Virus record (IMG/VR): IMGVR_UViG_3300043449_002710
Span: 1 to 64,000 of that record
DNA: 64,000 nt
Direction: 5' to 3' (one strand)
In this document: in pieces, positions 16,323-48,860 of the stretch
Layout: every line of letters begins with the position of its first letter
Position numbering within the stretch: position 1 is the stretch's first letter
Program-made: the position numbers and the translations under genes
Notes under the pieces: model-generated
Seen by the model: only the letters and a program-made list of their open reading frames with translations
Database searches by the model: none
Told to the model about the DNA's origin: nothing

Positions 16323-19300
16323 TCACAACAAATCTAGTCCAGATTGAGCACGCTTCTGGTTTAAGATCCCAGCCACGCTCTTTCGATAATCTTCCGTAAG
16401 TTGCAGATCCAAAAGGATTTTGGACAACAGTTCTTGGAAGTCTTGGAAAGTGACGCAGCCCATTGCTTTCCCTTCTTGCTGAAATACCTGAGCGCGTTTA
16501 GCGTCATCTAAACTGAAATCATCGAGGGGGGTTGGGAGAACGTGCTCGGGCAGATCCCAATCTTTCTTCTTGGCGGCCAAAATTTGATGAGCTTCAATCG
16601 GTGTGTGTTCTGGGTAGGTATCTCCGTTAAGCTGAGATAAAGCGCTGAGTTTTTGATCTTCAGGTATCAAGAATCTTTTGGAGTTCGCTACACTTCGAGT
16701 CAAACCACTCAGGGTTGGCGTATCCGAGCTGGAGTAATTGCTCTCGGTTTTCTCGGAGATTTCGAAGCGCTCTAGCCACGCTTTCTCGTTCTCTTGGCGA
16801 GAGGGGTTCGCGCTCGTCGATAGATTTGCTTTCGATGATTTTTCGGTCTTCCATCTTGTCCTCATTCTATCACAAGCGTCTTTTGACGCAACAGCTAATA
16901 AACTTTCGCTATTTTCTAAACAACCGTCTAAATCTTGGACAGCCGCTTGGGTTTTCGATTCCTTAAGGATTTGATCCACCAAGGAAGCTTTGGCTGGCAA
17001 GACCTCTACAACAATCCCGCCTAAGATTTTCTTAGTCCTGCCTTTAATTTTATAAGCCACTTTTTTAGCTAGATTCGAATCCCTGAAATACAGGTGGTGT
17101 TTCAAAACTTGCGCTTTGGGTTTTTTACCGAGCGGAATCAGGATTTGATTTCCACCATCCACGTCTTCTCCGGTAACGAGCACTCCATCAAAGCCTTTCT
17201 TTTTGGCTAGATCTGAAATATCCCAGCCGTCAATCTCACCTTCGAAAAGAGGATTTTTACCTTTGCTAGTAAACTCAGAATCCCAAAGACCTTGGGTATT
17301 TTCGTCGTTGATCTCAGCGAGCCGATTGAAAGTCAGGTTGTACTCCGTGACAATCATCCAATTTTCTGGGTTATCGTCTTCTTCGTAATCTGGATCTGCC
17401 CAATCCATTGTGGTGGGCAAGGCTTCTTCTGCTGGCCGCAGATAGGTTCCTTGGCCCAACACCCCATCTCCTGGGTAGTAGGGATCGGCCTGAGAAATGA
17501 GAATGTCTCGCACAAAGCGCCAAGCCTTCAAGGTCCTAGGCTCGGCTTTGCTTTCGACTTTTCTTTTTTCCCAAAAACGCTTTGCATCCATCGAGCGGTC
17601 TTCGCTAGGTTCCACAGACAGCCCACGATCCTCCTCGACCAGATCCATCATTTTGGACATGAGGCCTTGGCGTCGATAGCTATCGAGAACCCACATATTT
17701 TCAGACGTGAAATGACTCTCGTGCTCACTAAGCCTGAGCCCAGCCACGATATCTTGATCTCGGATGGCAAGCACTCGGAAGCATCGCTCACCCTCGTAAG
17801 AACCGTAGCCACCCACCAAGCGGAAGCCGTTCCAGTTCTCGTCAAAATGGATTTCTGTTATTTCTTCTTCGATGATTTTTTCAAGCCCAGAAAACACACA
17901 CGCAGCCACCACCTCGGGCAAGAGCACCTTCATGTAGTGGTTGAGTTCCTTGAGCTGGTTGCGACAATCGACCAAGGCGTCATGGATGTTTTCCTCGTCG
18001 TAGCCTGCAAGCTCTTTTCTGTCTTCCTTGGCCCCAGTCCGGTGGCGTGCCATGGCTTTCAAGGGGTTGAGATCGAACGTCTCATAGTGGAAGGTGCCCG
18101 GGATTGGCCCCCCATCTCCAATGTCAGCTCGATCCAAAAGGCCATTCTCGTACAAGAAGGCAAGATCTGTGTGAACGCAATCTCCGCAAGGGGTCACCTT
18201 GCCTTTGAGTTCCCCAAGCCAGTCACAGATCTTTTCTTTAGCTTCCCCAGGCTGAAGGTTGGATTCGTTGCAGCGCTCAAAGATATGCTCTAGGTGCTCT
18301 CGGTGGAAATCATTCTCAGGCTTCCCATCGTGTCTGAGGTACAAGACCAAAGGCTCGCCCACCTCTTCGTACTGGTTGTCCTTGAGCTTGAGTTTGAGCA
18401 TCGCGATCTGAAGAAGCTTGTCGCGGCTTGGGATGACGCCTGTCATCTCGCAATCTAGCATCAAGAGATCTTCGGGGAGAAAACCAGACGATGTTTCATC
18501 GAGAGTAGCTGTCGTAGTATATTTTCCAAAAGGACGATTTGGTTGAGCCCACAATTTCTTTGCGTCCTCAGTACGGTCGTCGGATGGGATGAGTTTTCTG
18601 CCAGAAGCTTTCTCGGCATGGAGATACATAGCGGTCGCTATTCCTTGCCGCTGAAAATCTTCTAGAACATAGGTCCCAGCGTCCAAACTAAATTCTATTG
18701 CGTCTTTATCAGAGATGGGTTGAATCGTTTCTTGATCTAAAACCCTAAAAGCAGAGTATCCAACCTCTTTATTTTTAAAATTAGCCCAAACGCAAAATAT
18801 ACCGTTTGTATCTGCTAAAGTATTAAAAAGGTTGTAGCGCCCGTGTTTGGTTTTGATTTTTAATACAGGCTCTTTTTTCTTAGAAATTGCTGCTTTGACT
18901 TTGAGATCGAGATCCTTGAGAAAATACCCTTCGCCGTTAAAAAGAGCGTTGGCCCAAGGAAGGGAAACCACAAACGCATCGATCGTTTTTCTTTTCTTTT
19001 CGTAAGCTGTGATGAGCCTATGCGATCCGTCGAGAACCGAATAGTAATCCCCTACCTTAGCCACGATAATAGGATTTTTTAGGTGTTCTTCTTCGACCCT
19101 TCTACCGTGATCAAAGACTTCGAAATTTTCAGCGACAAACTCCATGGGGAACGAAACGGTTTTTCCAGCCGATACCGCTTTATCCCACTTGTCTCTAAAG
19201 ATAGCCTCTTCTTCTGGGGGAACATTTCCATCGTCGTCCATATCCGCGATCATCAGAAGAACAGAAAAGGCATCTTCCAAATCGGGCTGATAGGGCTTTA

Positions 19301-21260
19301 CCGCTGTTAGAACTGGATCTTTTTTCGATTCGACGTGATCTTCTTCAGTCCAATCGAAAGTCCTGACGGGTTTCACACAGCTCTTATCGTAGACCTCAAA
19401 AGAGATATGCCCGTTGAAGTTCTCGTCTTCCACCGCGCCACAAAACCCCAAGTCTCGAATCACGGTATGAATCAAACTCAGAGCTTCGTCATGAGTGGCT
19501 TGAGGCAACCCCAATGGGCCCTGAGTCAGTTTAGCAACGACATCGGGGCCGAATTTTTCTTCCACAAGCTTCTGATGCTCAGGCTTTCTCATGTCGAGAA
19601 TCCTAGACAGATCGAGATGAAATTCATGGATACGCAGCGCAAACTCTTTGGCAAAATCGAGGCTATCGGTGAAATAAGCGCCCGCATCCCCATCCCCAGA
19701 GGGGATCTGACCTTCAGGCAGGAAGTCTGAACCGTGGTAGACTGTTATCGTAGAGTTTTCTAAGGAAGCTTCCGTAGAGACTCCGTCGATTTTTTTCCAA
19801 AGCTTACGGTAATAAAACTCCGATCCATCACCCAAAGCTTCTGGGCTTTGAATTTGCTTGAGTTCTTTGTATTGGGGATCTTTTTTGAAGACGTGTGGAA
19901 AATCTAAATCGGGATCAAATTGCCTTGCGGTGAAATCATAAAAAGTGTCTTTGATCTTAACAAGAGTATGCCCGATTTCTTCTCCTTGATTTAGTTCACC
20001 GATATCCGATCTAAGGGTAACCTTCGAAGACCAAAGTTTTATTGGTAACCCCATACTCTGAGCCATGTAAACGACAGCGTTGGAAAAGTCGGAGCATTGC
20101 CAGTAAGCTTTATCTGGAAAAGCAAATCCACTCTCAGCCGCAACTTCTTTTACAGTGTTGAGGAACTCATCTATGGGGTTAGATGCTGCAGACATTCTAC
20201 CCATGCCGTGTGACGGGGCGCTGCTTTTTATTGGGGTTAACTCTTCGTATTTTTCAATCGAGTGATCAAAAAATCTTTCAAACTCAAGAACTACGTGGTT
20301 GGGTAGGCTTGAAACCCAGTACCCATTAAAGATCATTCGATAAGTGGATGCCGTGCTGGTTTTCACTTCCACTTTAAATTCGGCGTACCGAACTAAACCT
20401 TCAATCGGATCTTGCTCGGGTTCGTAATTGAGGATTTGACCGTTGGGTACGATCGCTACTTTTGATTCTCCAGAAACTTTAAACGGTGTTGGAGAAACGA
20501 TCCAATTTAAAAACTCTTTTTTAGTTTGTTCAGGCAGGTCAGCGTTTTCGATGAGCGACTTGAGGTTTTGATTTTTCTCGCTCGTCTGAAGCAGAGAGAC
20601 TTCGCTCGATAACGCCTCTTGTAGCGTCAGCTTCTTTCTGCGAGATCTTGCCTTGCTGGAGTAAATCTTTAGTGGCTTTTCCGAATACTCGCTTGAATCG
20701 TTCCAGAATCTGCTTGTTGATAGTGGCGGCCATACTTTCCCCAATATATCATTTTTTTGACTTGACGCAACAAATAAACCACGTTCATTTAAATCTAGGG
20801 ATTCTCTGAACTTCTTTCCGTCTGGGGTTTGCATATCCCCAGGCAAGATTTTCTTGCCCGAGGCTTTCTCGATCTCCTGATACATGAGGGTGGCAAGACC
20901 TTTTCTGCGGTGCGCTTCACCCACCATCAAATCCCATGCCTTCAAATTCTTAGGGTCTTTGACAAGACTTGTGATCGCTTGCTCTTGGATCTCGCTGCAT
21001 CCATTGCCGGTGGCTTTCATCTCTTGAACGAACTGATCGGCAGCTTCGCGAGATTCAAAGACGTAGCGGCCACCGTCAGGCCCATCGTAAACGTCCACGG
21101 CAAACTCTAGATCCCCTTCTTTGGGTTCGAGCATATTGGGGATCGCCCGAGCAAAGCCCACGGACTCGCCTCCAAAGTAAACTTCGGCGTTCCAGTAGTC
21201 GGTGCCGTTTTGTTTGTCTTCCCAAACTTCGATAGTATATCCAGGCGGAAGCTGCTTCAT
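16323..21260 (-). CDS. polyvalent protein, 1645 aa (GNAT, papain-like, ART-like, ParB-like, GNAT, DEDDh exonuclease, GNAT, ART-like)
   Basis: Three R(R/Q)xGxA/M acetyl-CoA motifs (HRRKGLAT, FQRQGIAT, YRRQGLMS); QC..F...GHT...DFTARQF; VYHGS...AYFT; LDGSHRL; LDCEMTG...HDALVD; LGQGTYL...GFDGV. Confidence 0.85.
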   Translation of the reverse strand: MKQLPPGYTIEVWEDKQNGTDYWNAEVYFGGESVGFARAIPNMLEPKEGDLEFAVDVYDGPDGGRYVFESREAADQFVQEMKATGNGCSEIQEQAITSLVKDPKNLKAWDLMVGEAHRRKGLATLMYQEIEKASGKKILPGDMQTPDGKKFRESLDLNERGLFVASSQKNDILGKVWPPLSTSRFWNDSSEYSEKPLKIYSSKARSRRKKLTLQEALSSEVSLLQTSEKNQNLKSLIENADLPEQTKKEFLNWIVSPTPFKVSGESKVAIVPNGQILNYEPEQDPIEGLVRYAEFKVEVKTSTASTYRMIFNGYWVSSLPNHVVLEFERFFDHSIEKYEELTPIKSSAPSHGMGRMSAASNPIDEFLNTVKEVAAESGFAFPDKAYWQCSDFSNAVVYMAQSMGLPIKLWSSKVTLRSDIGELNQGEEIGHTLVKIKDTFYDFTARQFDPDLDFPHVFKKDPQYKELKQIQSPEALGDGSEFYYRKLWKKIDGVSTEASLENSTITVYHGSDFLPEGQIPSGDGDAGAYFTDSLDFAKEFALRIHEFHLDLSRILDMRKPEHQKLVEEKFGPDVVAKLTQGPLGLPQATHDEALSLIHTVIRDLGFCGAVEDENFNGHISFEVYDKSCVKPVRTFDWTEEDHVESKKDPVLTAVKPYQPDLEDAFSVLLMIADMDDDGNVPPEEEAIFRDKWDKAVSAGKTVSFPMEFVAENFEVFDHGRRVEEEHLKNPIIVAKVGDYYSVLDGSHRLITAYEKKRKTIDAFVVSLPWANALFNGEGYFLKDLDLKVKAAISKKKEPVLKIKTKHGRYNLFNTLADTNGIFCVWANFKNKEVGYSAFRVLDQETIQPISDKDAIEFSLDAGTYVLEDFQRQGIATAMYLHAEKASGRKLIPSDDRTEDAKKLWAQPNRPFGKYTTTATLDETSSGFLPEDLLMLDCEMTGVIPSRDKLLQIAMLKLKLKDNQYEEVGEPLVLYLRHDGKPENDFHREHLEHIFERCNESNLQPGEAKEKICDWLGELKGKVTPCGDCVHTDLAFLYENGLLDRADIGDGGPIPGTFHYETFDLNPLKAMARHRTGAKEDRKELAGYDEENIHDALVDCRNQLKELNHYMKVLLPEVVAACVFSGLEKIIEEEITEIHFDENWNGFRLVGGYGSYEGERCFRVLAIRDQDIVAGLRLSEHESHFTSENMWVLDSYRRQGLMSKMMDLVEEDRGLSVEPSEDRSMDAKRFWEKRKVESKAEPRTLKAWRFVRDILISQADPYYPGDGVLGQGTYLRPAEEALPTTMDWADPDYEEDDNPENWMIVTEYNLTFNRLAEINDENTQGLWDSEFTSKGKNPLFEGEIDGWDISDLAKKKGFDGVLVTGEDVDGGNQILIPLGKKPKAQVLKHHLYFRDSNLAKKVAYKIKGRTKKILGGIVVEVLPAKASLVDQILKESKTQAAVQDLDGCLENSESLLAVASKDACDRMRTRWKTEKSSKANLSTSANPSRQENEKAWLERFEISEKTESNYSSSDTPTLSGLTRSVANSKRFLIPEDQKLSALSQLNGDTYPEHTPIEAHQILAAKKKDWDLPEHVLPTPLDDFSLDDAKRAQVFQQEGKAMGCVTFQDFQELLSKILLDLQLTEDYRKSVAGILNQKRAQSGLDLL
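16660..16854 (-). CDS. nested (overprinted) 64-aa gene inside the polyvalent-protein gene
   Basis: Protein-like helical sequence; the host frame here is S/T/K-rich junk; own promoter 9 nt upstream. Confidence 0.7.
   Translation of the reverse strand: MEDRKIIESKSIDEREPLSPRERESVARALRNLRENREQLLQLGYANPEWFDSKCSELQKILDT
16864..16891 (-). promoter_or_regulatory. internal sigma70-type promoter for nested gene 16660..16854
   Basis: TTGCGT-N16-TAGAAT with extended -10 TG. Confidence 0.65.
20539..20733 (-). CDS. nested (overprinted) 64-aa gene inside the polyvalent-protein gene
   Basis: Helical, protein-like sequence; the host frame is S/K-rich; promoter 9 nt upstream. Confidence 0.65.
   Translation of the reverse strand: MAATINKQILERFKRVFGKATKDLLQQGKISQKEADATRGVIERSLSASDEREKSKPQVAHRKR
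20743..20770 (-). promoter_or_regulatory. internal sigma70-type promoter for nested gene 20539..20733
   Basis: TTGCGT-N16-TATATT with extended -10 TG; same TTGCGTCAA as the promoter at 16864-16891. Confidence 0.65.
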
Positions 21261-22678
21261 GTTTTAACCAGCCATTTCTTTTTCAGAAACTCAGCAAATT
21301 CTTTGACGTTCTTGAGCTTTTCTTTTCTTAAGATATCAACTAAATCGGCAATGCCTGCATCGGGATCTTTTTTGTAATTGTGGATATCGGCTAGCAAAGA
21401 AGAGACGAAATCTTGAAAGTACCAAGACAAGCTATAGAGCTTCTTCTGAGCTTCATTGGAAAGCTCTTCTTCTGAAGACTTGTTGTATAGTTCTAGGATT
21501 GGTTCGATGTATTTTCGCTTGGAGCTACTTTGGTATTCGTAAGGGTTTTTGACTTCCAAGTCCAAGGACTCCAATGGAACCGTTTTGGTTTTGTCCAAAA
21601 CCTCAAATGCTTTTTGGTCTTCGTAAAGGTAGATCGGAATGTTTTTCTCTTGAGCAATCGCGTAAGCGTTTTTGATCCAGTTTTTCCAATTATCGTAAGT
21701 CAGATTCTTGAAGTTCACTAGGATATGGATCTCTTTAATGTACTGATCCGCGTTCTTGATCTGAGGCTCGCGAGACCAGAGGCGGTCTTCCATTTCATTT
21801 TTTCTTGGGTCGGCTTTTTTAAATGCAGGTCCCCAGTAATCCACCGCTTCGCCGGGGTATTTCTGGTTTAATTTCTCCCCATCCAAGACGAGTTGAACAT
21901 CGCGGCTTTTGTTGTAGTGCCCGATCTTGGATCGAGACGTGGAGAAGAAGTAGAAATATCCCTCAGGTCTTTTGATGTCGTCCGATGCGGTGCCTAGCAT
22001 CGTTGAAAGTTGGAAGGCGTTTTGGGTCAAGATCTTCTCTAGGCTATGAAGGCTTGTACCATGGTAAAGGATTTTTGAGAGACCGGCTTCTACCGTTTGG
22101 GCATGGGCAGCAGCCCTGCCAGCCTTAGTATCCAAGACTCGATAAGCGATACCCGCTTTCTTGAGCACTTCAATCGCCTCAGGCATCCACTTGGCGTTGT
22201 AGTTAGGAACCGTGGGGTCGTTGAAAAGATCCACCCTGAGGACGTAGGGCTTGATATTGAGGCTATCCATCCCTTCGGGCAGGATCACTGCCTCCTCGGC
22301 CTCTTCTCTGCCTGTGTGGGAAGCTTCTGTCTCTAGGTCGGTGGTCGGCAAAACCTTGTTGTGATTGGAAAGCTTAGTGCCATCGATAACGATCCTAGCG
22401 TTCGCGTTGAAACCCACCTTGTCTTCGTTGGAATAGCCCGCATTGAATTCCAGGCGGGGGTTCCGTGTGAAGGAAAGAAACTTCCGCCCCTCGTAAGGGC
22501 CGTACTGCACTCTTCGTTCACTGAATAGAGCGCCGTTTTTGAAGATCCCGACAATTTGGCCGACTGGGGTGAAATGATAAAGAGTCCCCACTTGCTTGGC
22601 TGAAAGAACCAAGCTCGATTGAGCGGAATCTCCGAACAACTGCTCTACTGCCCATTTAACGCCAGGGTGAATTTTCAT
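21257..22678 (-). CDS. protein with two ADP-ribosyltransferase-like domains
   Basis: LYHFT...LSFTR...EAEE and LYHGT...FSTSR...EMEDRL; ATGA-coupled to the 1645-aa gene. Confidence 0.7.
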   Translation of the reverse strand: MKIHPGVKWAVEQLFGDSAQSSLVLSAKQVGTLYHFTPVGQIVGIFKNGALFSERRVQYGPYEGRKFLSFTRNPRLEFNAGYSNEDKVGFNANARIVIDGTKLSNHNKVLPTTDLETEASHTGREEAEEAVILPEGMDSLNIKPYVLRVDLFNDPTVPNYNAKWMPEAIEVLKKAGIAYRVLDTKAGRAAAHAQTVEAGLSKILYHGTSLHSLEKILTQNAFQLSTMLGTASDDIKRPEGYFYFFSTSRSKIGHYNKSRDVQLVLDGEKLNQKYPGEAVDYWGPAFKKADPRKNEMEDRLWSREPQIKNADQYIKEIHILVNFKNLTYDNWKNWIKNAYAIAQEKNIPIYLYEDQKAFEVLDKTKTVPLESLDLEVKNPYEYQSSSKRKYIEPILELYNKSSEEELSNEAQKKLYSLSWYFQDFVSSLLADIHNYKKDPDAGIADLVDILRKEKLKNVKEFAEFLKKKWLVKT

Positions 22679-22748
22679 GTGATTACCTACGTTAAAAATA
22701 ACACTAAACCAAATTGACTTACTGCGTTATATCTGCCAATCTACTAAG

Positions 22749-23507
22749 ATGATTCGTCAAACCACACCCGCCCAAATTACGGATAAAATCAAAAACTTCT
22801 GCCAGGGCGTGGCTCAGAAAGAACCTTTTTACGTCAAAGTAAAGCCCTCGGGAAAACACCAGGAATGCTTCTTCAACTGCTCTAGGTTCCTATCCACCCA
22901 CCCAGGGTACAAAATCGTTTTTGGTTGGATCATTTGGGAAGCTCCTTGGATATTAGAAATGGAGCAGCACTCTATTATTCAAACTCCAGATGGCGATTTT
23001 TTGGATGTAACGCCACAAGCAGACGGCGAGGAATCCATCTTGTTCCTACCCGATGACTCAGCAGCCCCCTCTTTCATACTCGTGGTGGATCGGCCCGATG
23101 ACATTGTCACTTGCCGTAAAGCCAACATCACATTCCCTAAGACACAGTCAAAAACCCAATGGGTCATTACTAACGTGGGGCTCTCTCAATTCAAAAATTC
23201 TCTTTCTGGGCTGAACGTTCAAGGGCCAAAATCACTCGAAGAAATTAATGCCACCTATGATTCTTTGTCGGGGCGGAAGCTGAACACCTTTTCAGATACG
23301 CTCGAAGACATCGTCTCGATGCTAGAAGGAGGCTCGGTGCTAGGAGGCCGCCACAGCATCAAAAAAACAAACCAGCCGCTTTCTTGTCTCAGCCATTTGT
23401 CGAACCCCAGCAAAGAAAAGCTGCCTAGAAATTCCCCTTGCCATTGTGGGAGCGGTGAAAAATATAAAAAATGCTGTCTCGAAAAAGATTTAAAGGGCTC
23501 AGTTTAA
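22749..23507 (+). CDS. SEC-C motif protein
   Basis: C-terminal RNSPCHCGSGEKYKKCC; N-terminal ECFFN...GWIIW...H...DVTP (transglutaminase/papain-like) domain. Confidence 0.85.
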   Translation: MIRQTTPAQITDKIKNFCQGVAQKEPFYVKVKPSGKHQECFFNCSRFLSTHPGYKIVFGWIIWEAPWILEMEQHSIIQTPDGDFLDVTPQADGEESILFLPDDSAAPSFILVVDRPDDIVTCRKANITFPKTQSKTQWVITNVGLSQFKNSLSGLNVQGPKSLEEINATYDSLSGRKLNTFSDTLEDIVSMLEGGSVLGGRHSIKKTNQPLSCLSHLSNPSKEKLPRNSPCHCGSGEKYKKCCLEKDLKGSV

Positions 23508-26500
23508 GAGCCCAAAATTTCTTTGATCTTCACCCACGCAAAATCCGTGTGCTCATTATTCAAAATGGGATTGAACTTCTCGGCCACCTCGAACAAGAAA
23601 GTCGTGTACTTGAACGAACCCTTTTGAAACACCGTCTTCTTTCCGGTGTCATGGTAGGCAGGGATCATTCCAATCTCCTCCTCAGTCTCCTTCAAAGCCG
23701 AAGCCTTGATATCCGTGGGGTTGCCCTTGGGATCGACGGGCACGGCACCCCCAGGGATGCCCCAGGTATACGGGTCCATGACCCAATGCGAGCGCTTTAA
23801 GAGCAAGATATCATCTTGACACCTGAACATGATGCCCGAGGCCTGAGAACCCCAGAAATCTCCCACGTGCCCTTCGTCTTCGTATTCAGAAGATGACAAG
23901 GTCTCAAATGGATCTGCAGTTGAAAACGCCTCTGCAGGTAAGGGCGTTTTGACTACGAGATATGCGGGAGTTTCTCGGTTCAATTCATCGTCAACGGTAG
24001 GACCAATCCCATCTTCTGGGTCCACGCCAAGTTGTGATTTTTTTACTTTCACTTTTAAGACTGTATTGCAACCACGCTCTTGTGCGAACCAAAGTGCGTT
24101 ATCGTACTCATTTGTAACGTAAAGATACTTACTTTGCCCCCCGTGAGCCCCTGTTGGGCTTTTTCCATTCCACCCACGTTCCAAAAGAGAAGCGGCATTC
24201 TGGTTACAAGTTCCATGGAAAAGTTCCAACACCAGATCCTCGGCAGGGGATGAATGAATGCGATCTCCATCCTTCCACTCGGATAAATAAATGACCTTGG
24301 CAGGGATTGAACCCGGTCGCAGAATAACTTCCGACTCCTCAAGTCTGAGATCAAATAAGCTTGCAAGATCTTCTGGGATAAGATTCAGATCCACTAACAC
24401 CTGTTCGGGAGAAACCGTGGCCTCAAGGATTAAGCCCTTCTGGCAGATCTCATCGCAAGCAAATTCGCTTTGCTTGAGCCAACCCAAATCGGTCGTCCAA
24501 GAACTCGGGCGCGAGTCTCGATAGGTCACGTCTTTCTTTTCAAAAGTGTCTAGACCCAAAGAGCGCAAAAGATGGCCTTCATGCCCACCTTCGGAAGCTC
24601 TGAGACCTCGGTAGATTGTCACGGGGGCTTTTGGTCGATACTGGCTTAAAAAAGCTTCCACTTCAGGGTATTTCGAATACTGATCCGCTTTTTCGTTACC
24701 CCAGTAATCCCAGGACCGAAAGAAGTTGATGATATGCCTAGAAATTCCGTTGATATCTTCTTTTTCACCGCTCGGAATATCATCCGAGTAGTCGGAGCTT
24801 TCCTCCTTAAAAGACGCCTGAACGGTGGGTGAAAGCCTTTTAATGAGCCATCCGTTTTCTAAGCTCGAATCCAGACCGTAGTATCTTTCACCTTTTTGAA
24901 GCTTAACAAGTCTCTCGGTTGTGATTTTAAAATCGAGTGGCAAAACCTTCACTCGCACAGTCTCATCGCCATTGACAATGACCTGTAATAGTCTGTGGTG
25001 CCCATCAGACACGACGAATTTGTTCTTGTAGGGATAGACCTCGATGGGGTCCTGAGTTTGCGCCAACATGCCCTTGTGTAAAGAGTCCACAGCAACTTCC
25101 ATGTTGTTTTTGTCAGGCCAGATTTTGTCTATGGCTACTTCTCTCGTTGTGGGGGATTTAGAAGACTGAACCCCAAAAGGCCGATTGGGCTGATCCCAAA
25201 GCAAACGCCCTTCTCGACTTTTCGACAGATTCGGGGCAAACTTCATCCCAGTCTCTTTTTCCACGAAAACATAAAGAGCGTTGGCGAGACCTTGTCTGCG
25301 AAACTCAGGCTCAATGTAGGTATCTGTCGAGACTAAAAACCCAGGCTTATTCCAGGCCGCCCCATAAAGGAGCTGACCTACGGGTTTATCGCCTAGAAGA
25401 ACAAAAGCGCGGCCCTCTCGGATCGAGTCATTATCCCCACGCATGGTGATTTGGTTTTCAAACTTGAACTCTTCATGAGTTTTTGGATTATCGAGAACAT
25501 TATCCTTATTTGTTGCTGTGGTTGCGTAAACCACTGACGAGAGCGTCGTATTCGGCTTGCCCGTGCTGCTGAATAATTCTTGCTTTGAACTCAGGCTGTT
25601 CGAGTCGGTGAAGGGCTTTTTCGAAATCCCGGGTGTCAGGCTCTGGGAGTTCCTTAAGCTTTTTGTCGATGATTTGGTCAGCCAGTTTTTCTTTTTCGTC
25701 CATACAGCGCCTTTATAAAAGCTCTCGATGACCAGCGATGACGAGGTCGTAATTTTCTTTGCCGTACATTTGGATATATTTTTCTGGATTAGCGAGCATG
25801 TCTCTATACTCGGCTCGCTCCTCTTCGAGGATATCTCGGTTGGCAAGCCCGTATTCATCGACAACATCTTTGTCGAGGAGTTCATCGAGGGCTTCGCTAT
25901 GAGGTTTGAGTTTTTTGTCCATACAGCGCCTTTATTATATTTATTTGGATTAAAAAAGTCAAGATTATCCAAGTCGTTGAAACTAGACAATATTATTTCG
26001 TTTTCGATCTCAGAGAAAGGAACTCCTTGGTCCATGTCCGAATCTTGATCTTCTGGTATCTTGCCTAAGATCTCGAATTGGCTGCCTGGGATTTTCCCTT
26101 CTTTTCTGACAAAGACGGTATAGCCCGCACCATCGTCTTCAATCTCGATGTCTTTTTCGGTCGGAAAGAATTCTAGGATCGTATCGCCATAGCCAGAATA
26201 GACCTTGTCTCGACCCACCCACATCAAAGTCCAGTCGGTTCCGAAATGACTTTTAATTACGTCCCTGAAAAATCGAGCACGATCTTGTTCACTCAAGTCG
26301 TCATCATGCAAAGTTTTCTGAAGCTCTTTGACTTCCTCGTCTGAAAAAAGCTCAAAAAACAAGTGATAGTAATTGAACCAATCGTGAAGGATCGAGTCGT
26401 CGCTGAAAGAGAATCGATTTTTGCCATCGTACCATTCAGCCCCTCGGGTGTGACTGAACCCATTTCTCAAAATTTCTTTTGCTGCTTTCTCAGTGGTGAC

Positions 26501-29500
26501 GTGAAAATACCTTGGCAGACTCGCTGCCAAAGTCTTGGTCGAACCCCAGTCTTTCTTGAGGACATCTCGGTCTTTGAACTGAAGGGGCAACACCTTCACG
26601 CGAAGATCCCCCGGGAGAAGCTTCTCCTCTTTCACTCTTTCCCAAATATCATCCGACACCGTGATATGGGGACGGTAGGTGGGATAGTCGTCCTTACGCA
26701 CAACTTCCAAGGCGTTGTGCATGTCCTCGATTCGAGAAGGCAAGCCCTTCAATTCAAGAACACGCACCTTCCCGTTTTGTTTGGAGTCAAACTCGACAGG
26801 CTCCCAAGTGAAGCTTGTGGGTGGGCTTAAGTCTTTACCTTTCAAGATCTCCTCGATCTTGTCTACTGTCACAGGCTCTTCGCCAAAGAACTTGACTGTG
26901 ATGTGCGCTTCATCCACGCCTTCCATCTCTACTGGGTAGTAGAGGAAAGAAGTGGTGTTGGCGTACTTGTCTCGGATCTCTTCTTTGGTTGCCTCTTCCA
27001 CTTTGGAAGCTTTTATCTTTTTGCTGACATCGACTAGCAAGACTTTTGGTGTCACCCCTAAGATGAAAGCCGCGTCCAAGCGAGTGTTTCCGCTCAAGAC
27101 CTGATAGCCCTCGGGGGTTTTTAAAACGATCGGGTAGGGAATAGGATCGTTGTTTTCAAACCCTTTCACAATCCGTTTCACGTCGCGAGGAAACGAGTAG
27201 CCAGAAACCAACTCTTCGAGTTCTTCAATCGAGTCCGTATGGCTTCTCATTCGAGTCTGGTGATCAAGATCTGGAGTCCAAGTAACGGCCTGGGATTTAT
27301 TGACGGACTTTTTAAAGTCCTCGATGTCTTCAAAGTATTCTGGAATCCATCCCTTTTTGACCTGCTTGATGACTTCCCATTCCCACTCTTGCTCGATCTG
27401 TTTTGTAGTGAGATTCACCCAGTTGGTGAATTCATAGGCCGCTGCCCCGAGCGATAAGCGGTAGACTTTAGAGTCTGGTTCATTTTCTTCTCTAGGGCCC
27501 CACTCAATGACATCTGGATTAAAGATGATGAGCTGGTCGGGCTCTCCACTATAGATAATTTCTTGATCATCTTCGATGCCATCGATCCCGAGATCTTTCC
27601 AAAACTGAGTGAATTTTTTTCTATCGTGGAAATAAGAGCGAAGGGTTGTAAACCAAAGGTAATCGCTAGGACCGTCCCCGAGCGCTTTTTGAATATCTTC
27701 TTCAGTTGGGTCATTGATGTTTCCGCCACTATTTTCAAGAAAGCTATTCCACTCGGAGATATCTTTTCTTTGCTTGGCGGCATTGAAAGCATCTAAACCT
27801 GTCTTGATTCCGGCTTTTTTCCAAATCTCCCACTTTTCAGTAGAGGTAAAACCACTGAGAAGTTTAATCTTGGTACCGGGCTTCAGCTTGGCATCCCAAC
27901 GGTATTTCTTGGCAGACCACTCGCTTACATCGATGTAAGTTCCCTTTTTGAAGAGATAGATTCCCTCGGGGTCAAAATAAATACGACCCGATTCCGAGTG
28001 AACACTTGGTATCTCTGGGTGATTGGAGACATGGAAATAGGGGTAATCCACGTCCTTGATTCCAGCGGTATTCTTCTGACTAGACGTAGCCAAATCGTCT
28101 TTTAAAACTTTTTTGAGCTTCAGGTTCTGAACGGTGGTCACATCAAAGACCACCTGATCTTCGTAGTCGGTGTTGTGGTAGGCTTTCACTGCATAAGGCA
28201 CCGTGAATTCAAAAAGATTGGGCCCGTATTTCAAAGACATTTCTTCAATATCTTTTTTGGTCTTGATATCTTTTTTCTCAAAAGCAAACGCTAGATCTCC
28301 GTGCCCAGCATACTCATGGTGAGTGAGTCCCAATCTTTCTGGTGCTTTTCCTTTGAACCCGGTTTTTAATACTTCATCTGGCTTTGCGGGGGTGAATCGA
28401 TAGAGGGTGGTTCTTCCTAAGATTTTAGGGTTTTCAAAGTAGACTAAAGACGAATCTTCATCTTCTTCCTTTTGTTGGATGTATTGCGTCTCAAAGTAGG
28501 CGAGTCTTTTTTGTCTTCTTTTTTCAGGGGAAAGCTTTTTCAGTTCTTCCAGATACTCTTCGTAATCCCAGTTAGCTTGGTGGAAATAAAGTTCGATATC
28601 TCCGTCGATCGTCTCGTCGTCTAAATTCTCGAATTCTTCTTTAGCCTCTTCCAGCCATTGCTTTTCGTTTTCTTGGCGGTCGGCCATGTAATAGAACGTT
28701 AAAAGCTCGGGGCTGTTTTTGAGTTTCTCTTCTGGTGATATTTTCTTGGCCGCCTCGATTTCCAAGTCGGCCCTGGCTTGCTTGGGCAATTCAATCTCAA
28801 GCTGAGTTTCCCCGGGCTTGAGAATCTGGATGGGTTCGATCTTGGCTCTAGGCTTTAATTCGAACTCGCGTTCGTTCTCAAAGTGGTCGTACCCTCTCCA
28901 GACAAGCTTTCTAAGAGTCTTTCCAAAATTGATGGATTGAAAGGGAACCCGAGCCTTGACGATCCAAAGAGGCAGATGCGAGTTTCTGCCTGAGTAGTTA
29001 TCGGCTTTGTGGTAGTCCCAGGTCCAATAAATGCCAAGCTTTTTAAAATCGATTGTGTCTGGGCTCTCTGCGCTGATCCCACGGTACAAGAGAACTGCAT
29101 CTCCGTCGAACTCGCCCGAGTATTCTAGCTCTTGCATCCAGCGCGGATAGTCTTCTTGGAAGGCTCGGTCCAAGACAAATTCTTTTTGGGCTTCCTTGTT
29201 TACTAAATTATCAGGCAGATCCTGCCAGTTCATCGTGTCGCTTAAGATCAAGTCTTGGACTTTTTTATCTCGCATCGCAGCCGCGAAATGCTCGTTTAAT
29301 TTGCCCAAGAAGGCCGCTTCGACGGGTATTAAGTTTGAAGTGATCTCCGCTTTAAAGTCTTCGTATGTGTCGTCATACCGGCACTTTAGAGCAACTAATT
29401 TCTCAAGAACAAATCTATTAACTTGTTGCCCGCGAGTGTCTCGGTAAATCCACTTCCCAAAAACGAACAAACGTAATGGGGTTTGGAATTTATTTAGCTT

Positions 29501-30859
29501 TATTCTAAAATATCCACGCTCGACAACACCTTCCAGCCGCGTTAAACCGGAAACTTGCTCAATATCTAATTTGGCTAGGTTCTTCGTAGATAGTGCCCCA
29601 GTTAATTCTTCGTGGCACTTGGCAATTTTTTTGCTGCTGTATTGTTCGCTACCCTTCAGATTCAGAGGTGGAAGCGGCGGTTGGAATAGACCCGTAAAGC
29701 TTTTTATAGCGAGCGAGGAGATCGTCGTAAACATCTTGTCCGAGGGCTTCGATGTAGGCTTGTGGGTTGGATACCATGCGGGCGTAACTTTCCCGGTCAT
29801 CGGTTTCCCATTGTCCGCTGAATTCTTTTTTGAATTCCTCGTCCAAGAGTCTATCGTATTTAGATTCATCTCTTGCCATACATCTCCTATGCTATCAAAG
29901 TTTATGCCGCTGTGCAACACGGGACTTGAGTCGTAACCAATTGGAACTAATTGTGTTTTATTTTCTACACGATTGGAGTCATCCGCCCAAACGGTATCCA
30001 TCGTTTTTTTGACAGTCTTCTCTAGCTCCTTCATGTCCATGGGCTTTTTATCCGCGCCCCGACCAAAGCGTTCGATCGATTCACCGACACTGTAATTAAA
30101 GCGGTGGCTGCCAGAGTAGTAGACGGATATCTCAGAGGGACGAGCCTGATTTAAATCGTGTGCTCTCGGGGATACCTTCCAGCTTGCATAATGGCCGGTG
30201 TAGGGCTTAGGACCATCGTAGACATGGACAATCCCTTCAAAGGTCTTCACACCCCATTCGGTTTTCCTTCGAGGCAAGACAAAATCGACTTTGCCATAGG
30301 GGGCGACCAATTCCTTGATCCGCTCCATGACCTTGATGGTATCCTCGTAACCCGTATCTTTGAGATCGATTCTTTTGACCACCTTGATTTTGGTCGGATC
30401 TAAAACCAAAAGCTGCTCTTCCCAAGCATGGATGACTTCGATGTCATCGAACACAGCGTCATAACCGAGATTACGCAGCGCCTTATTCCAGGCCCCTGCA
30501 CTTCGGTAGCCTTTCAAGATGAAATGATTCTTCATCAGCTCCCAAAACGAATCAATTGAGAGCGTGAATTCTTTCTCTGGGATTTCAATTTCAAGCTGCC
30601 TTAAGATTTCTTTAGCCTGATCCAAAGTCAATCGGCCCAAATCCAAGATTCGAAGCGATGGGTCAATCTCCACCTCAAACTTGTAGGGCATGACTTGCCA
30701 GAAGGGCGCAGGGTTGAAGTCACTAGGGAACAAATAGATCCCGGCAGGGTCTTGATGAAACCCCTTAGGATTGATTGTGACCTGGGGTACTTTGGAATAG
30801 TGGACCCAAATCTTATCGTTAGCGTGCTCTGAGAAGTCTGCAAAGGTGAGAGTAGCCAT
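23504..30859 (-). CDS. polyvalent protein, 2451 aa (multiple ART-like domains, two ParB-like, 2H phosphoesterase, GNAT, C-terminal NUDIX)
   Basis: PAGIYLF/PEGIYLF...G.D...DD units; LYRGI..IYWT..EREF; IYRGL..SSWT..ESEV; LFHGT; LSGNTRL and SDGHHRL; HITV twice; FRRQGLA; WGIPGG...ALKETEEEIG; AGGAG RBS. Confidence 0.88.
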   Translation of the reverse strand: MATLTFADFSEHANDKIWVHYSKVPQVTINPKGFHQDPAGIYLFPSDFNPAPFWQVMPYKFEVEIDPSLRILDLGRLTLDQAKEILRQLEIEIPEKEFTLSIDSFWELMKNHFILKGYRSAGAWNKALRNLGYDAVFDDIEVIHAWEEQLLVLDPTKIKVVKRIDLKDTGYEDTIKVMERIKELVAPYGKVDFVLPRRKTEWGVKTFEGIVHVYDGPKPYTGHYASWKVSPRAHDLNQARPSEISVYYSGSHRFNYSVGESIERFGRGADKKPMDMKELEKTVKKTMDTVWADDSNRVENKTQLVPIGYDSSPVLHSGINFDSIGDVWQEMNLNTIDSWTRNSKKNSADNGKPMTGKVTPAWYPTHKPTSKPSDKMFTTISSLAIKSFTGLFQPPLPPLNLKGSEQYSSKKIAKCHEELTGALSTKNLAKLDIEQVSGLTRLEGVVERGYFRIKLNKFQTPLRLFVFGKWIYRDTRGQQVNRFVLEKLVALKCRYDDTYEDFKAEITSNLIPVEAAFLGKLNEHFAAAMRDKKVQDLILSDTMNWQDLPDNLVNKEAQKEFVLDRAFQEDYPRWMQELEYSGEFDGDAVLLYRGISAESPDTIDFKKLGIYWTWDYHKADNYSGRNSHLPLWIVKARVPFQSINFGKTLRKLVWRGYDHFENEREFELKPRAKIEPIQILKPGETQLEIELPKQARADLEIEAAKKISPEEKLKNSPELLTFYYMADRQENEKQWLEEAKEEFENLDDETIDGDIELYFHQANWDYEEYLEELKKLSPEKRRQKRLAYFETQYIQQKEEDEDSSLVYFENPKILGRTTLYRFTPAKPDEVLKTGFKGKAPERLGLTHHEYAGHGDLAFAFEKKDIKTKKDIEEMSLKYGPNLFEFTVPYAVKAYHNTDYEDQVVFDVTTVQNLKLKKVLKDDLATSSQKNTAGIKDVDYPYFHVSNHPEIPSVHSESGRIYFDPEGIYLFKKGTYIDVSEWSAKKYRWDAKLKPGTKIKLLSGFTSTEKWEIWKKAGIKTGLDAFNAAKQRKDISEWNSFLENSGGNINDPTEEDIQKALGDGPSDYLWFTTLRSYFHDRKKFTQFWKDLGIDGIEDDQEIIYSGEPDQLIIFNPDVIEWGPREENEPDSKVYRLSLGAAAYEFTNWVNLTTKQIEQEWEWEVIKQVKKGWIPEYFEDIEDFKKSVNKSQAVTWTPDLDHQTRMRSHTDSIEELEELVSGYSFPRDVKRIVKGFENNDPIPYPIVLKTPEGYQVLSGNTRLDAAFILGVTPKVLLVDVSKKIKASKVEEATKEEIRDKYANTTSFLYYPVEMEGVDEAHITVKFFGEEPVTVDKIEEILKGKDLSPPTSFTWEPVEFDSKQNGKVRVLELKGLPSRIEDMHNALEVVRKDDYPTYRPHITVSDDIWERVKEEKLLPGDLRVKVLPLQFKDRDVLKKDWGSTKTLAASLPRYFHVTTEKAAKEILRNGFSHTRGAEWYDGKNRFSFSDDSILHDWFNYYHLFFELFSDEEVKELQKTLHDDDLSEQDRARFFRDVIKSHFGTDWTLMWVGRDKVYSGYGDTILEFFPTEKDIEIEDDGAGYTVFVRKEGKIPGSQFEILGKIPEDQDSDMDQGVPFSEIENEIILSSFNDLDNLDFFNPNKYNKGAVWTKNSNLIAKPSMNSSTKMLSMNTGLPTEISSKRSEPSIETCSLIQKNISKCTAKKITTSSSLVIESFYKGAVWTKKKNWLTKSSTKSLRNSQSLTPGISKKPFTDSNSLSSKQELFSSTGKPNTTLSSVVYATTATNKDNVLDNPKTHEEFKFENQITMRGDNDSIREGRAFVLLGDKPVGQLLYGAAWNKPGFLVSTDTYIEPEFRRQGLANALYVFVEKETGMKFAPNLSKSREGRLLWDQPNRPFGVQSSKSPTTREVAIDKIWPDKNNMEVAVDSLHKGMLAQTQDPIEVYPYKNKFVVSDGHHRLLQVIVNGDETVRVKVLPLDFKITTERLVKLQKGERYYGLDSSLENGWLIKRLSPTVQASFKEESSDYSDDIPSGEKEDINGISRHIINFFRSWDYWGNEKADQYSKYPEVEAFLSQYRPKAPVTIYRGLRASEGGHEGHLLRSLGLDTFEKKDVTYRDSRPSSWTTDLGWLKQSEFACDEICQKGLILEATVSPEQVLVDLNLIPEDLASLFDLRLEESEVILRPGSIPAKVIYLSEWKDGDRIHSSPAEDLVLELFHGTCNQNAASLLERGWNGKSPTGAHGGQSKYLYVTNEYDNALWFAQERGCNTVLKVKVKKSQLGVDPEDGIGPTVDDELNRETPAYLVVKTPLPAEAFSTADPFETLSSSEYEDEGHVGDFWGSQASGIMFRCQDDILLLKRSHWVMDPYTWGIPGGAVPVDPKGNPTDIKASALKETEEEIGMIPAYHDTGKKTVFQKGSFKYTTFLFEVAEKFNPILNNEHTDFAWVKIKEILGS
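25506..25703 (-). CDS. nested 65-aa gene (second of a nested pair), paralogue family G...YD.L
   Basis: Same shifted frame; leader TAAAGGCGCTGTATGGAC is identical to that of 25713..25922. Confidence 0.8.
   Translation of the reverse strand: MDEKEKLADQIIDKKLKELPEPDTRDFEKALHRLEQPEFKARIIQQHGQAEYDALVSGLRNHSNK
25713..25922 (-). CDS. nested 69-aa acidic gene, paralogue of 29649..29879
   Basis: YRDMLANPEKYIQMYGKENYD aligns with YARMVSNPQAYIEALGQDVYD; near-consensus promoter upstream. Confidence 0.85.
   Translation of the reverse strand: MDKKLKPHSEALDELLDKDVVDEYGLANRDILEEERAEYRDMLANPEKYIQMYGKENYDLVIAGHRELL
25934..25962 (-). promoter_or_regulatory. near-consensus sigma70 promoter embedded in the polyvalent CDS
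   Basis: TTGACT-N17-TATAAT, 11 nt upstream of the ATG at 25922. Confidence 0.85.
29649..29879 (-). CDS. nested 76-aa acidic gene
   Basis: AGGAG immediately upstream, own promoter, and paralogy to 25713..25922. Confidence 0.85.
   Translation of the reverse strand: MARDESKYDRLLDEEFKKEFSGQWETDDRESYARMVSNPQAYIEALGQDVYDDLLARYKKLYGSIPTAASTSESEG
29889..29917 (-). promoter_or_regulatory. internal sigma70-type promoter for nested gene 29649..29879
   Basis: TTGCAC-N17-TAGCAT with extended -10 TG. Confidence 0.7.
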
Positions 30860-31253: not shown

Positions 31254-32020
31254 AATAGGGTCAGTATTAAAAGTTTTAACGCACACCAAAAACCAACTCT
31301 GCCTACCTGAATCAAATCCTCGCCGTGCGCGTAATCGAGCCAGTAGAGGCAAAAAAGGTTGACGTTTTGGTCAGGATAGCGGGGAAGTTTCCTTAGGTCC
31401 GTCTCAAACCCCATCTCTTTACTCTTAGAAGTCAGAACAAAACGTTTTTTATCAAATGTGTTTTTCCCAGAGAAATACTTTTCCACGTAGCGTTTGAAGA
31501 CTAGCTCCGCGATCTCCACATATTTTTTGGGGGGCTTAAGCTGATTGGCTTTGTCGCTCGGCCAAACCTGCGTGTAAAGATCCGTGAAGGTCCCAATGAT
31601 CGATGGCGTGGAGGAGATGTTGGTGTAATAATAAGAACCAAACTCTTTCCACTGGTAGTAACTCAGGTAGCTGTAAGGGATGCTTAAAAGATCCACCCCT
31701 TTGTTTTTGGTGATCAATACCAAACCAGCATGGATCACGACATCCGGTATGATTTGAAGAATGACGTTGTAAAAGAAACCGATGGCTTCATTTGTATTGT
31801 CATAGATCAAACAGATGTTTGCAGATTGAAAAAACTCGATCAGCTCAGTGCAAGAGATCTCGGGATCTAAAATACCGTAGGAGAGATTCCTTTTAGAAGA
31901 TTCGTTGATGTATTGTATTTCTTCTTTCAGCCAATTCAGTTCGGCTGATTTCATCCAGAGCCCCGGGCGGAATAAATAGTGTAGGGTGTAACCCTTGTAG
32001 CTTTTAGTTATCCGTTTCAC
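31244..32020 (-). CDS. conserved hypothetical protein, GNAT-like fold suspected
   Basis: RPGLW...VIHAGLVLI...LDY..GEDLIQVG pattern; overlaps the kinase stop. Confidence 0.6.
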   Translation of the reverse strand: MKRITKSYKGYTLHYLFRPGLWMKSAELNWLKEEIQYINESSKRNLSYGILDPEISCTELIEFFQSANICLIYDNTNEAIGFFYNVILQIIPDVVIHAGLVLITKNKGVDLLSIPYSYLSYYQWKEFGSYYYTNISSTPSIIGTFTDLYTQVWPSDKANQLKPPKKYVEIAELVFKRYVEKYFSGKNTFDKKRFVLTSKSKEMGFETDLRKLPRYPDQNVNLFCLYWLDYAHGEDLIQVGRVGFWCALKLLILTLLKK

Positions 32021-33188
32021 TCACCTGAAATAACAAGGGGCCGGTTGTGATTTTAATGATCGCACCGCCTTCAGGGTGATTTGCAAACTTCATTTTTTGA
32101 CCTCTTGCTTCCACAAGATTCTGAATCAGAAATAACCCAATTGAATTTCCCTGAGCCTTGGTGGTTTGAATCCATTTCCCAGAATTCAATTTTTGAATCT
32201 GCTCTTTTTGAAACCCATTTCCATTGTCTCGAATAAACAAACAACTGTCTTTAATACCGATCTCAATTCTGCTTGCCTTTATTTCCACGGCATTGATGAT
32301 CAGATTGTATAGAATTTTTGTGATCAAGTTTTTGTTTCCGACAACCACAGAATCCTTTTCAAGTACGATTTCCGCGCCTTGGAGCTGAGATCTCAATATG
32401 ATTTTTAAGCTCTCTAGAATCTCGGAGAGCTTAAAATTTTCGGTCGTATTGTATGGCTTACTCAGACGGTTGATCTCTTCGATATAGGCCAACAAAAACT
32501 TGGAATCTCGATATAAAATCTCTATCAATTTTTTATTGTTGTCGTTATTTTCTAATCTCTTTAACAAGAAAATGGCATTGATCGGTGAGGTTAAAAGATT
32601 TTTAAAGTCGTGAAGAATGAGACTAGAGTGACAACCGATGTCCAAGAATTTTTCTGCGAGCGCGTCTTTTTGCTTTCGGGTGATGCTAACAAAGTTGTAC
32701 CCGACAAAGGATAACAAGGTGGTGATAAGCACCCCGGCTGTGGCATCAAAGTGAAATTTACTAATAGCAGCAAGGTTAGTTGTTTCATAGACCGAAGCTG
32801 GGCTTAGAAAAATCATCGTAATCATTCCAGCCGCTGAGACGCCCATCGAAGGGTAAAAAACTTTTTTGGGGGCCATGAAAAAGATCCCAATCGGGATCAC
32901 AGCTTCCATGTAGGCCAAGTAGTAGCAAGGAAAATAATATTGACCGTGAATCGAATAAGCTGCAATCGTCAGTAAAAACCCCGGCAGATGCCATTGACGA
33001 TATTTTTTAAAATGGATTTGAACAATGATGACCAGACAAATGAACGCTGTTAAAACTCTCCCCAAAACATAAGAAAATCTCAAATAGTCTGGTAACTGGG
33101 GAGTATCCAAGAAAATCATGACCAGTGGTATGACAAGACCGAAATAAGTAACCGCTTTTAATGTTTTAGGTTCATAATCTAACATCAT
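32004..33188 (-). CDS. membrane sensor histidine kinase
   Basis: About 6 TM helices; H-box LHDFKN, N-box NLIINA, G1 DNGNG and G2 GNSIGL. Confidence 0.9.
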   Translation of the reverse strand: MMLDYEPKTLKAVTYFGLVIPLVMIFLDTPQLPDYLRFSYVLGRVLTAFICLVIIVQIHFKKYRQWHLPGFLLTIAAYSIHGQYYFPCYYLAYMEAVIPIGIFFMAPKKVFYPSMGVSAAGMITMIFLSPASVYETTNLAAISKFHFDATAGVLITTLLSFVGYNFVSITRKQKDALAEKFLDIGCHSSLILHDFKNLLTSPINAIFLLKRLENNDNNKKLIEILYRDSKFLLAYIEEINRLSKPYNTTENFKLSEILESLKIILRSQLQGAEIVLEKDSVVVGNKNLITKILYNLIINAVEIKASRIEIGIKDSCLFIRDNGNGFQKEQIQKLNSGKWIQTTKAQGNSIGLFLIQNLVEARGQKMKFANHPEGGAIIKITTGPLLFQVSETDN

Positions 33189-48829: not shown

Positions 48830-48860
48830 AGGTTATTGTTACTAAATGAGGAAACCTATT

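Follow-up and report, generated by a model that had tools for sequence, protein, structure and literature searches.

Polyvalent proteins, single polypeptides in which 2-15 biochemically disparate, conflict-related domains are united, occur widely in phages and plasmids. Since 2017 it has been asked whether they act whole or in pieces, and what enzyme would set such pieces free. For this release Iyer et al. (2017, PMC5512222) proposed embedded metallopeptidases or a C-terminal assemblin-like domain. The DNA considered here is a 64-kb window, the first part of the 223,260-bp virus record IMGVR_UViG_3300043449_002710 (estimated completeness 81%), in which three minus-strand open reading frames (ORFs) encode P0001 (1645 amino acids, aa), P0002 (473 aa) and P0003 (2451 aa). 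Their module matches, and shuffled homologs carrying the PF18760 family, identify them as polyvalent proteins as Iyer et al. use the term, and a four-residue motif, [VILT]-x-[AS]-[AS], recurs at the junctions between their modules. Both polyvalent proteins and cargo processed by a prohead protease are known; what is new here is a defined junction motif together with a separate candidate protease, and the reading of the motif as a cleavage site is partly supported by the data below.

In phage T4 the Alt protein and the internal proteins have an L/I-X-E site and a 10-residue capsid-targeting sequence; Alt, an ADP-ribosyltransferase (ART), is packaged, trimmed by the prohead protease and injected, the cut is made after Glu, and the substrates are single-domain proteins losing short propeptides (PMC9026906). 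In phiKZ, 201phi2-1 and SPN3US, which are also jumbo phages, a mass of ejection protein is processed by a gp21-like protease at a three-residue motif, S/A/G-X-E or A-X-E, likewise cut after Glu, where mostly N-terminal propeptides are removed and several processing sites sometimes occur in one protein (PMC10052503, PMC5694885); in the SPN3US ejection proteins the site is A-X-E (PMC10052503). Virion proteins of the cultured Pseudomonas phage PaBG, its capsid protein among them, undergo proteolytic processing, and its particle contains a 221-kDa protein (PMC7412058). Herpesvirus assemblin, of the same protease fold family, cuts itself and its scaffold partners. The general consensus of its sites is (V/L/I)-X-A|S. 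The sites of the pseudorabies virus enzyme are YLQA|T and VQA|S (PMC4498786).

The present locus resembles the polyvalent proteins of PMC5512222, as its passages describe them, in giants that mix ART, GNAT, NUDIX, ParB-like and nuclease modules, in extreme shuffling with proposed processing, and in homologs with PF18760 ART-PolyVal and SprT-like modules. However, those passages give no site motif, whereas a defined junction motif is found here, and the window proteins are without an embedded metallopeptidase, the candidate enzyme being a separate prohead protease. The combination of one product, short recurrent junction motifs and many enzymes is also that of RNA-virus polyproteins, an analogy already drawn by Iyer and colleagues, although the proteases and domains are unrelated and the enzyme proposed here is a dsDNA-phage capsid-maturation protease acting inside the prohead.

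The module boundaries were set independently of the motif, as the ends of BLAST alignments (breakpoints) between shuffled homologs. Word-based searches gave eight metagenomic homologs (P0004-P0011) of 1,400-2,700 aa, whose shared modules are 40-67% identical and stand in permuted order, and five further family members came from metagenome loci; the large ORFs of loci L022 and L025 were left out, since they lie next to distant copies of the N-terminal module and share no modules with the family. In the window proteins 12 of the 33 matches to [VILT]x[AS][AS] lie within 6 residues of a breakpoint, against 4.6 expected (p 8e-4). In the homologs, which were outside the view of the reader who had noticed the motif from the DNA of this stretch, the count is 42 of 89 against 14.7 (p 2e-12), both p-values being optimistic because of shared ancestry. 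When residues were shuffled within non-redundant junction windows, the observed counts of 16 (own proteins) and 42 (homologs) stood against 4.5 and 19.1, and none of 3000 shuffles equalled the observed count in either set; therefore linker composition is excluded as the cause of the enrichment. Among 7,485 class patterns of the same form, scanned without P0010 (86% identical to P0011), the motif ranked 5th for junction enrichment and the top 15 were all its variants of the shape [V/I/A/L]-x-[ASG]-[ASG], while control patterns (aliphatic-Glu plus a non-small residue, aromatic-Glu-small, aliphatic-Asp-small) were not enriched at breakpoints. The data support the conclusion that the motif marks module junctions beyond linker composition, and the enrichment at linkers expected by the sequence-only reading is present in the window proteins as well as in the homologs.

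That reading had cited 14 peptides at apparent domain boundaries; all of them are present in the three ORFs, and 12 of the 14 lie within about 12 residues of an independent breakpoint. The peptides start at residues 495, 787, 1117 and 1436 of P0001, at 23 and 195 of P0002, and at 512, 700, 1137, 1281, 1443, 1896, 2012 and 2200 of P0003, and those right on breakpoints are at 1119/1121 in P0001 and at 516, 702, 1135-1142, 1281-1283, 1443-1445 and 1896 in P0003. The codons at the 14 sites are diverse, with all Ala, Val and Ser synonyms used and no common nucleotide string, which argues that the constraint acts on the peptide and not on the DNA.

P0001 (window 16323-21260, minus strand), like P0003 delineated by ORF and translation, Pfam and PHROG matches and homolog breakpoints, comprises a GNAT module, a low-complexity stretch, an unassigned segment, a Cys-His transglutaminase-like lead (about 370-470), an ART-like module (about 505-660), a ParB-like segment (714-766), a GNAT (790-918), a DEDD RNase_T exonuclease (934-1105), a further GNAT (1119-1236), a second unassigned segment, another low-complexity stretch and a conserved C-terminal module (1538-1645). 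Its T-E-A-S (residues 496-499; window 19764-19775) precedes the ART-like module with the nearest breakpoint at 514, and its V-K-A-A (788-791; 18888-18899) is next to the breakpoint at 785, where P0004 has T-E-S-A at the aligned place. V-V-A-A (1117-1120; 17901-17912) stands between RNase_T and GNAT at breakpoints 1119 and 1121, T-Q-A-A (1437-1440; 16941-16952) is close to breakpoint 1432, and a relaxed site, V-E-S (1235-1237; 17550-17558), was recognised after the third GNAT by homolog breakpoint comparison. P0002 (21257-22678, minus strand) has a 26-residue leader ending in L-V-L-S-A, followed by two ART-like modules joined at T-V-E-A-G (195-199). The leader end, V-L-S-A (24-27; 22598-22609), is without a homolog boundary and has the shape of the V-L-A-S tag ends described below, and the junction V-E-A-G (196-199; 22082-22093) is kept as L-V-E-A-G in P0005, whose residues 1100-1396 are homologous to P0002 192-468.

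P0003 (23504-30859, minus strand) begins with an ART-PolyVal-like module, which is followed by an R-S-E ART-like module (about 516-700), a helical part with a second ART-like copy (703-1139), a ParB-like segment (1144-1280), a 2H/Acb1-like phosphoesterase (1285-1445), an ART-like module, a Ser/Thr/Lys-rich low-complexity stretch (about 1620-1790), a GNAT (about 1790-1898), a ParB-like segment (about 1930-1985), an R-S-E ART-like module (2024-2193), an ART-like module (2210-2312) and a NUDIX (2322-2451). Its sites follow this order. V-E-A-A (513-516; window 29312-29323; breakpoints 503 and 516) lies at the edge of a stretch of low predicted local distance difference test (pLDDT) values before a confident domain, and I-E-A-A (701-704; 28748-28759; breakpoint 702) lies inside a low-pLDDT dip (685-729) between confident domains. 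L-G-A-A (1137-1140; 27440-27451) has breakpoints at 1135, 1142 and 1149, I-K-A-S (1282-1285; 27005-27016; breakpoints 1281, 1283 and 1287) comes just before the 2H phosphoesterase, and L-A-A-S (1444-1447; 26519-26530; breakpoints 1436, 1443 and 1445) comes just after it, in an 11-residue pLDDT dip between confident domains. V-Q-S-S (1897-1900; 25160-25171; breakpoints 1896-1904) directly follows the GNAT, P0004 having V-T-S-S at the aligned place; V-Q-A-S (2013-2016; 24812-24823; breakpoint 2024) has exactly the form of the M-site of the pseudorabies assemblin, V-Q-A|S (PMC4498786), and I-H-S-S (2201-2204; 24248-24259) is placed between breakpoints 2193 and 2210. Two more sites were recognised beyond the 14 peptides: T-L-S-S (2320-2323; 23891-23902) immediately before NUDIX, and a relaxed V-E-N (298-300; 29960-29968; breakpoints 292-302) at the end of the N-terminal module, where homologs have A-V-E-S in a variable linker. 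An AlphaFold2 model covering P0003 490-1470, confident in parts only (mean pLDDT 57.5), agrees with the proposed boundaries at sites 512, 700 and 1443, which fall in low-confidence dips between confident domains, while sites 1137 and 1281 flank a ParB-like segment without a model and are hence uninformative.

The relatives indicate that the motif is held fixed where its surroundings are not. At the end of the N-terminal module V-E-S is found in four homologs, A-E-S in a fifth and V-E-N in P0003, the linker before it being variable in length and sequence and the sequence after it being unrelated. A [VIL]-x-[AS] triplet stands immediately before NUDIX in 7 of 9 proteins and before RNase_T in all 7 fused copies, with E, Q, I, N, S, T, K, V or A at position x. 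In locus L014 the RNase_T module starts its own ORF exactly where other phages have the motif, and therefore modules can work as separate polypeptides.

The genome encodes, outside the window at 192702-193469, a head-maturation protease. It was reached through the match of the capsid protein to that of Alcaligenes phage Afa-NA1, whose annotated prohead core protease lies nearby and matches the genome at this place with E 7e-23 in BLAST; the gene also matches phrog_18299, head maturation protease (E 3e-42). Pfam S77, S78, S78_2 and S21 searches of the genome gave no match, this protease included, and neither the surroundings of the capsid gene nor the tail block yielded a protease in PHROG and Pfam scans. 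In 38 metagenomic homologs of 64-80% identity, which come from contigs of up to 235 kb, H118, H131 and S175 are invariant. The AlphaFold2 model (mean pLDDT 80, about 90 in the core) has T4 gp21 (5jbl_B) as its best PDB match, with Z 10.1 and a root-mean-square deviation of 3.1 over 128 residues, followed by herpesvirus proteases with Z 7-8.8, so that the phage encodes a Ser/His enzyme with the assemblin/T4 gp21 fold. The N-terminus of this protease is poorly ordered and contains a conserved [FCL]-[VI]-[LVI]-A-x, which is the same motif shape. A predicted complex of protease 44-255 with P0003 1262-1301 scored 0.00 and is not evidence either way.

The same shape occurs in proteins that are not polyvalent. 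At least 9 small, otherwise unrelated proteins share the N-terminal leader [KR]-[YF]-P-x-[LVI]-x-[KR]-[VIL]-L-A-S, and the tag ends VLAS and VLAQAS pointed out by the sequence-only reading are present on leader-bearing proteins. In the window such genes start at 40812 and 48846, three others lie near the capsid gene and two lie 3 kb from the protease gene; beyond the window they start at genome positions 86134, 125379, 126652, 127074, 188969, 189556 and 200230 (loci L004, L006, L009 and L010). The gene at 48846-49334 (plus strand) encodes a small protein whose leader, read from an internal Met at 48861, ends in I-L-A-S, and the 57-aa ORF at 40812-40985 (plus strand), with a leader ending in V-L-A-Q-A-S, runs in a different frame into the beginning of the ORF for the 1364-aa DNA polymerase. 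The leader is conserved in relatives, and as a short shared leader ending in the motif it has the form of a T4-like targeting sequence; in the relative L030 (10770-12037) four leader genes directly follow the protease gene, with the residue after L-A varying. In the capsid protein V-E-A-G stands just before the conserved block, and 30 distinct relatives keep A-[LVI]-[AS]-S there.

These data can be read as parts of one system. Each junction tends to keep a signal, (V/I/T/L)-x-(A/S)-(A/S/G), in an otherwise variable linker. The capsid-maturation protease encoded by the phage would recognise this signal and, after loading of the polyproteins into the prohead, would cut them there into single modules, and the cut pieces would leave with the DNA at infection. 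The leader of the small proteins would be the counterpart of the T4 capsid-targeting sequence and would be removed by the same protease. Taken together, the proposal that the junction motif is a prohead-protease recognition site and that the polyproteins are cut inside the prohead is considered to fall a little short of an even chance; that the sites are cut and the proteins packaged, which enzyme acts and which bond it cuts are all reasoned from placement and likeness. The prohead-protease sites proposed by the sequence-only reading gain from the junction placement, from the gp21-fold protease in the genome, from the leader proteins with the motif end and from the processing of virion proteins in the relative PaBG, but the 14 peptides do not behave as one homogeneous site: 7 of the 14 have Glu or Gln at position x, which are also the commonest residues there in homologs, and the other half do not. 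A more far-reaching version appears somewhat unlikely. In it the gp21-fold protease would be specific for (V/I)-x-A|S, as herpesvirus enzymes are, and would cut the two giants (187 and 280 kDa), once packaged, together with P0002 into about 25 separate anti-host enzymes in the capsid; this site would also end a modular loading tag carried by at least 9 further cargo proteins.

Within the proposal the bond that would be cut may be placed in two registers, and a cut between the two small residues is mildly preferred over a cut after Glu or Gln. The former gives the assemblin type of site, with an aliphatic P3, a free P2, Ala or Ser at P1 and a small P1', a shape found in all 14 peptides, in the leaders and in the protease N-terminus, the likeness being one of shape and the scissile bond a presumed one. 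It is favoured because it fits these sites and the capsid relatives, because conservation stops right after the first small residue, and because it keeps the aliphatic residue at P3, as in T4 and assemblin sites. The gp21 relatives and the many Glu residues at x speak for a cut after Glu or Gln, but such a cut would put the aliphatic residue at P2, and Glu or Gln at x is missing from the leaders, the protease N-terminus, the capsid-protein relatives and half of the junctions. Compared with T4, the protease fold and the short conserved N-terminal leader on small proteins are shared, and ART-like modules here parallel the ART activity of Alt, whereas the motif is an aliphatic residue with two small residues and an optional Glu, and as substrates one presumes multi-module chains of 1,645 and 2,451 aa, in which many internal cuts would be made. 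From phiKZ, 201phi2-1 and SPN3US the present phage differs in lineage, its capsid protein being PaBG-like. Herpesvirus assemblin shares the fold family and the motif shape, which the protease here also bears in its own N-terminus, but it belongs to eukaryotic viruses and its substrate is a protease-scaffold fusion, not an effector array.

Several results weigh against cleavage by the prohead protease, and some of them would be expected if the motif were a structural property of linkers, with nothing cut and each polyprotein at work in one piece, like the virion RNA polymerase of N4. On this view a beta-branched residue is common at the end of a domain and small residues at the beginning of a linker, and [AS][AS] alone is about 2-fold enriched at junctions. 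The reversed pattern (29 against 19.1) and [^VILT]x[AS][AS] are mildly enriched too, and therefore part of the signal may be a general gradient from the end of a strand to the start of a linker. The density of the motif is 0.72 per 100 aa in the polyproteins and 0.69 in the remaining proteome, so most matches cannot be sites and the placement alone is non-random; the sequence-only listing took 12 of the 33 matches, 50 of 137 breakpoint windows (about a third) carry the motif, and some junctions have relaxed forms only, such as V-E-N and T-S-S-G. Each of 3 de novo Gibbs runs recovered the same motif; this is not counted as support because the information content was within the range of shuffled windows. 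Passages of PMC5512222 also refer to some polyvalent proteins as delivered unprocessed. The structural explanation is nevertheless judged unlikely, since the forward motif exceeded every within-window shuffle and outranked about 7,480 other patterns, since it stays fixed while the surrounding linker varies, and since the same shape closes the leaders of unrelated small proteins and sits in the protease N-terminus, neither of which is a domain junction. Two further difficulties concern the enzyme and the loading: T4 gp21, the nearest structural relative, cuts after Glu, which clashes with the preferred register, and P0001 and P0003 are without the N-terminal leader that would target them to the prohead.

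The sites might also be genuinely cleaved by another enzyme, whether an embedded peptidase, a small stand-alone phage metallopeptidase or a host protease after injection. Such release corresponds to the model of Iyer and colleagues in the passages of PMC5512222, and the SprT-like metallopeptidase modules of some homolog polyproteins (HExxH in P0006-P0009) could be the cutter instead of the prohead protease, a point that also counts against the latter. The genome's only stand-alone HExxH protein (167 aa, phrog_1233; 134623-135126, plus strand, L006) and a Peptidase_C92 permuted papain-like protein (133916-134533, minus strand, L006) are encoded a few kb from the capsid gene, and P0001 370-470 bears a Cys/His signature with a Transglut_core match. 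No HExxH motif was found in P0001-P0003, however, the Transglut_core match is far below threshold (E 0.21), the motif shape suits assemblin-fold enzymes and not what is known for zincins, and leader genes adjoin the prohead protease gene in L030; cleavage by another enzyme is thus considered quite unlikely. Heavy module shuffling between related phages would, finally, suit a DNA-level linker that promotes module recombination and is no protein signal, but this was rejected as very improbable on account of the diverse codons described above; moreover, four residues (12 nucleotides) are too few for homologous recombination, and the peptide is variable at position x.

If cleavage by the prohead protease is true, every junction would carry its own release signal and the module order would therefore be free to recombine, which would explain the free module shuffling. 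Dicing at every junction would amount to a polyprotein strategy of a dsDNA phage, the role of prohead proteases would extend from the trimming of propeptides to the dicing of effector arrays, a gp21-fold phage enzyme could have assemblin-like specificity, and a natural tag-and-release system for foreign cargo in phage heads would be at hand. The junction motif and the candidate protease make the question of deployment testable with a peptide and an enzyme, and candidate anti-defence enzymes can be drawn from the module list, which has an Acb1-like 2H phosphoesterase, NUDIX and numerous domains of the ADP-ribosyltransferase-like and GNAT kinds.

The polyvalent nature of the giants is indicated by Pfam and PHROG scans of P0001 and P0003, which gave several GNAT, the DEDD RNase_T exonuclease, NUDIX, the 2H/Acb1-like phosphoesterase and three ParB-like segments, so that each of the two polypeptides unites many disparate conflict-related domains. 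Modules shared by P0001-P0011 and the proteins of the metagenome loci stand in a different order from one protein to another, as mosaic evolution would have it. The ART-like labels are tentative, being drawn from H-x-[ST] / Y-R-G style signatures and sub-threshold hits: PF18760 ART-PolyVal appears in the window proteins only below threshold (E 0.13 at P0001 505-560, with an atlas lead of 0.88 for P0003 1-300), and homologs P0004-P0007 pass or approach its cut-off. The faint Transglut_core match in P0001 370-470 (window about 19850-20150) accompanies a Cys...His...Asp signature, and this segment could be an embedded papain/transglutaminase-like peptidase or an effector. Ser/Thr/Lys/Asn-rich low-complexity stretches without homologs are found in P0003 at about 1620-1790 (window 25490-26000) and about 303-450 and in P0001 at about 160-240 and 1440-1535, one of them with a short internal repeat, Y-N-K-G-A-V-W-T-K and then Y-K-G-A-V-W-T-K. 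The suggestion that unconstrained linkers host nested genes found no support: most of the internal ORFs lie over folded domains and not over linkers, their translations resemble antisense noise, and those at 17292-18293, 19335-19730, 26363-26830 and others were discarded as antisense artefacts with low-quality translations.

The source is, on sequence comparison, an uncultured jumbo phage at the edge of the PaBG-like group, a placement based on the DNA polymerase, about 29% identical to the polymerases of Erwinia phage Yoloswag and Pseudomonas phage PaBG, and on the major capsid protein (phrog_2522, encoded at genome 130661-131770), which shares about 36% identity with its PaBG counterpart. 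Megablast of the region against cultured phages gave no match, tblastn of the polyproteins against them gave single-domain matches only, and a search of viral contigs for related loci found none with whole P0001 or P0003 and none with the capsid protein alone. The same-strand gene run of the window is headed by a 417-aa gene of a head-tail-connector-like family (33974-35227, minus strand; PHROG phrog_17327, atlas score 0.96), and in every relative with context a 416-418-aa connector-like gene stands directly upstream of the polyvalent gene. The context of a putative delivery with the DNA is that the polyvalent genes are co-oriented behind the connector-like gene in all relatives.

Around these genes some further features were observed. 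Between P0002 and P0003, on the opposite strand, a gene at 22749-23507 (plus strand) encodes a 252-aa protein with a C-terminal SEC-C metal-binding motif, and its 3' end overlaps the P0003 stop codon. The connector-like gene is flanked by a histidine-kinase-like ATPase (32004-33188, minus strand; HATPase_c with a weak HisKA match), a ThiF/E1-like protein (33240-33977, plus strand) and a PcfJ-like protein (36172-37572, plus strand). The DNA polymerase ORF (40945-45039, plus strand) has an N-terminus about 400 aa longer than the polymerases of its relatives (965-969 aa), and a frameshift or assembly indel near a G run could join the 57-aa ORF to it and so put the leader on the polymerase. A homolog of the Peptidase_C92 protein is found near the protease gene in L030 as well.

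The capsid gene is adjoined by a gene for a Mom-like DNA-modification domain fused to a GIY-YIG/HNH-type homing endonuclease (genome 128809-130566, minus strand; L006:10809-12566). In PaBG and Afa-NA1 a 'virion structural protein' and an 'ATPase' are encoded ahead of the capsid gene; their homologs here, a weak one in the case of the 'ATPase', lie about 6 kb from it (137837-140703, minus strand, L007), and the 690-aa protein has three motif matches near its C-terminus. A 1220-aa multi-module protein (183122-186784, minus strand; L009:11122-14784), in which there are a segment resembling GNAT, acidic stretches of low complexity and five matches to the motif (V-Q-A-A, I-E-A-S, T-Q-A-S twice and V-E-S-S), is probably another polyvalent protein.

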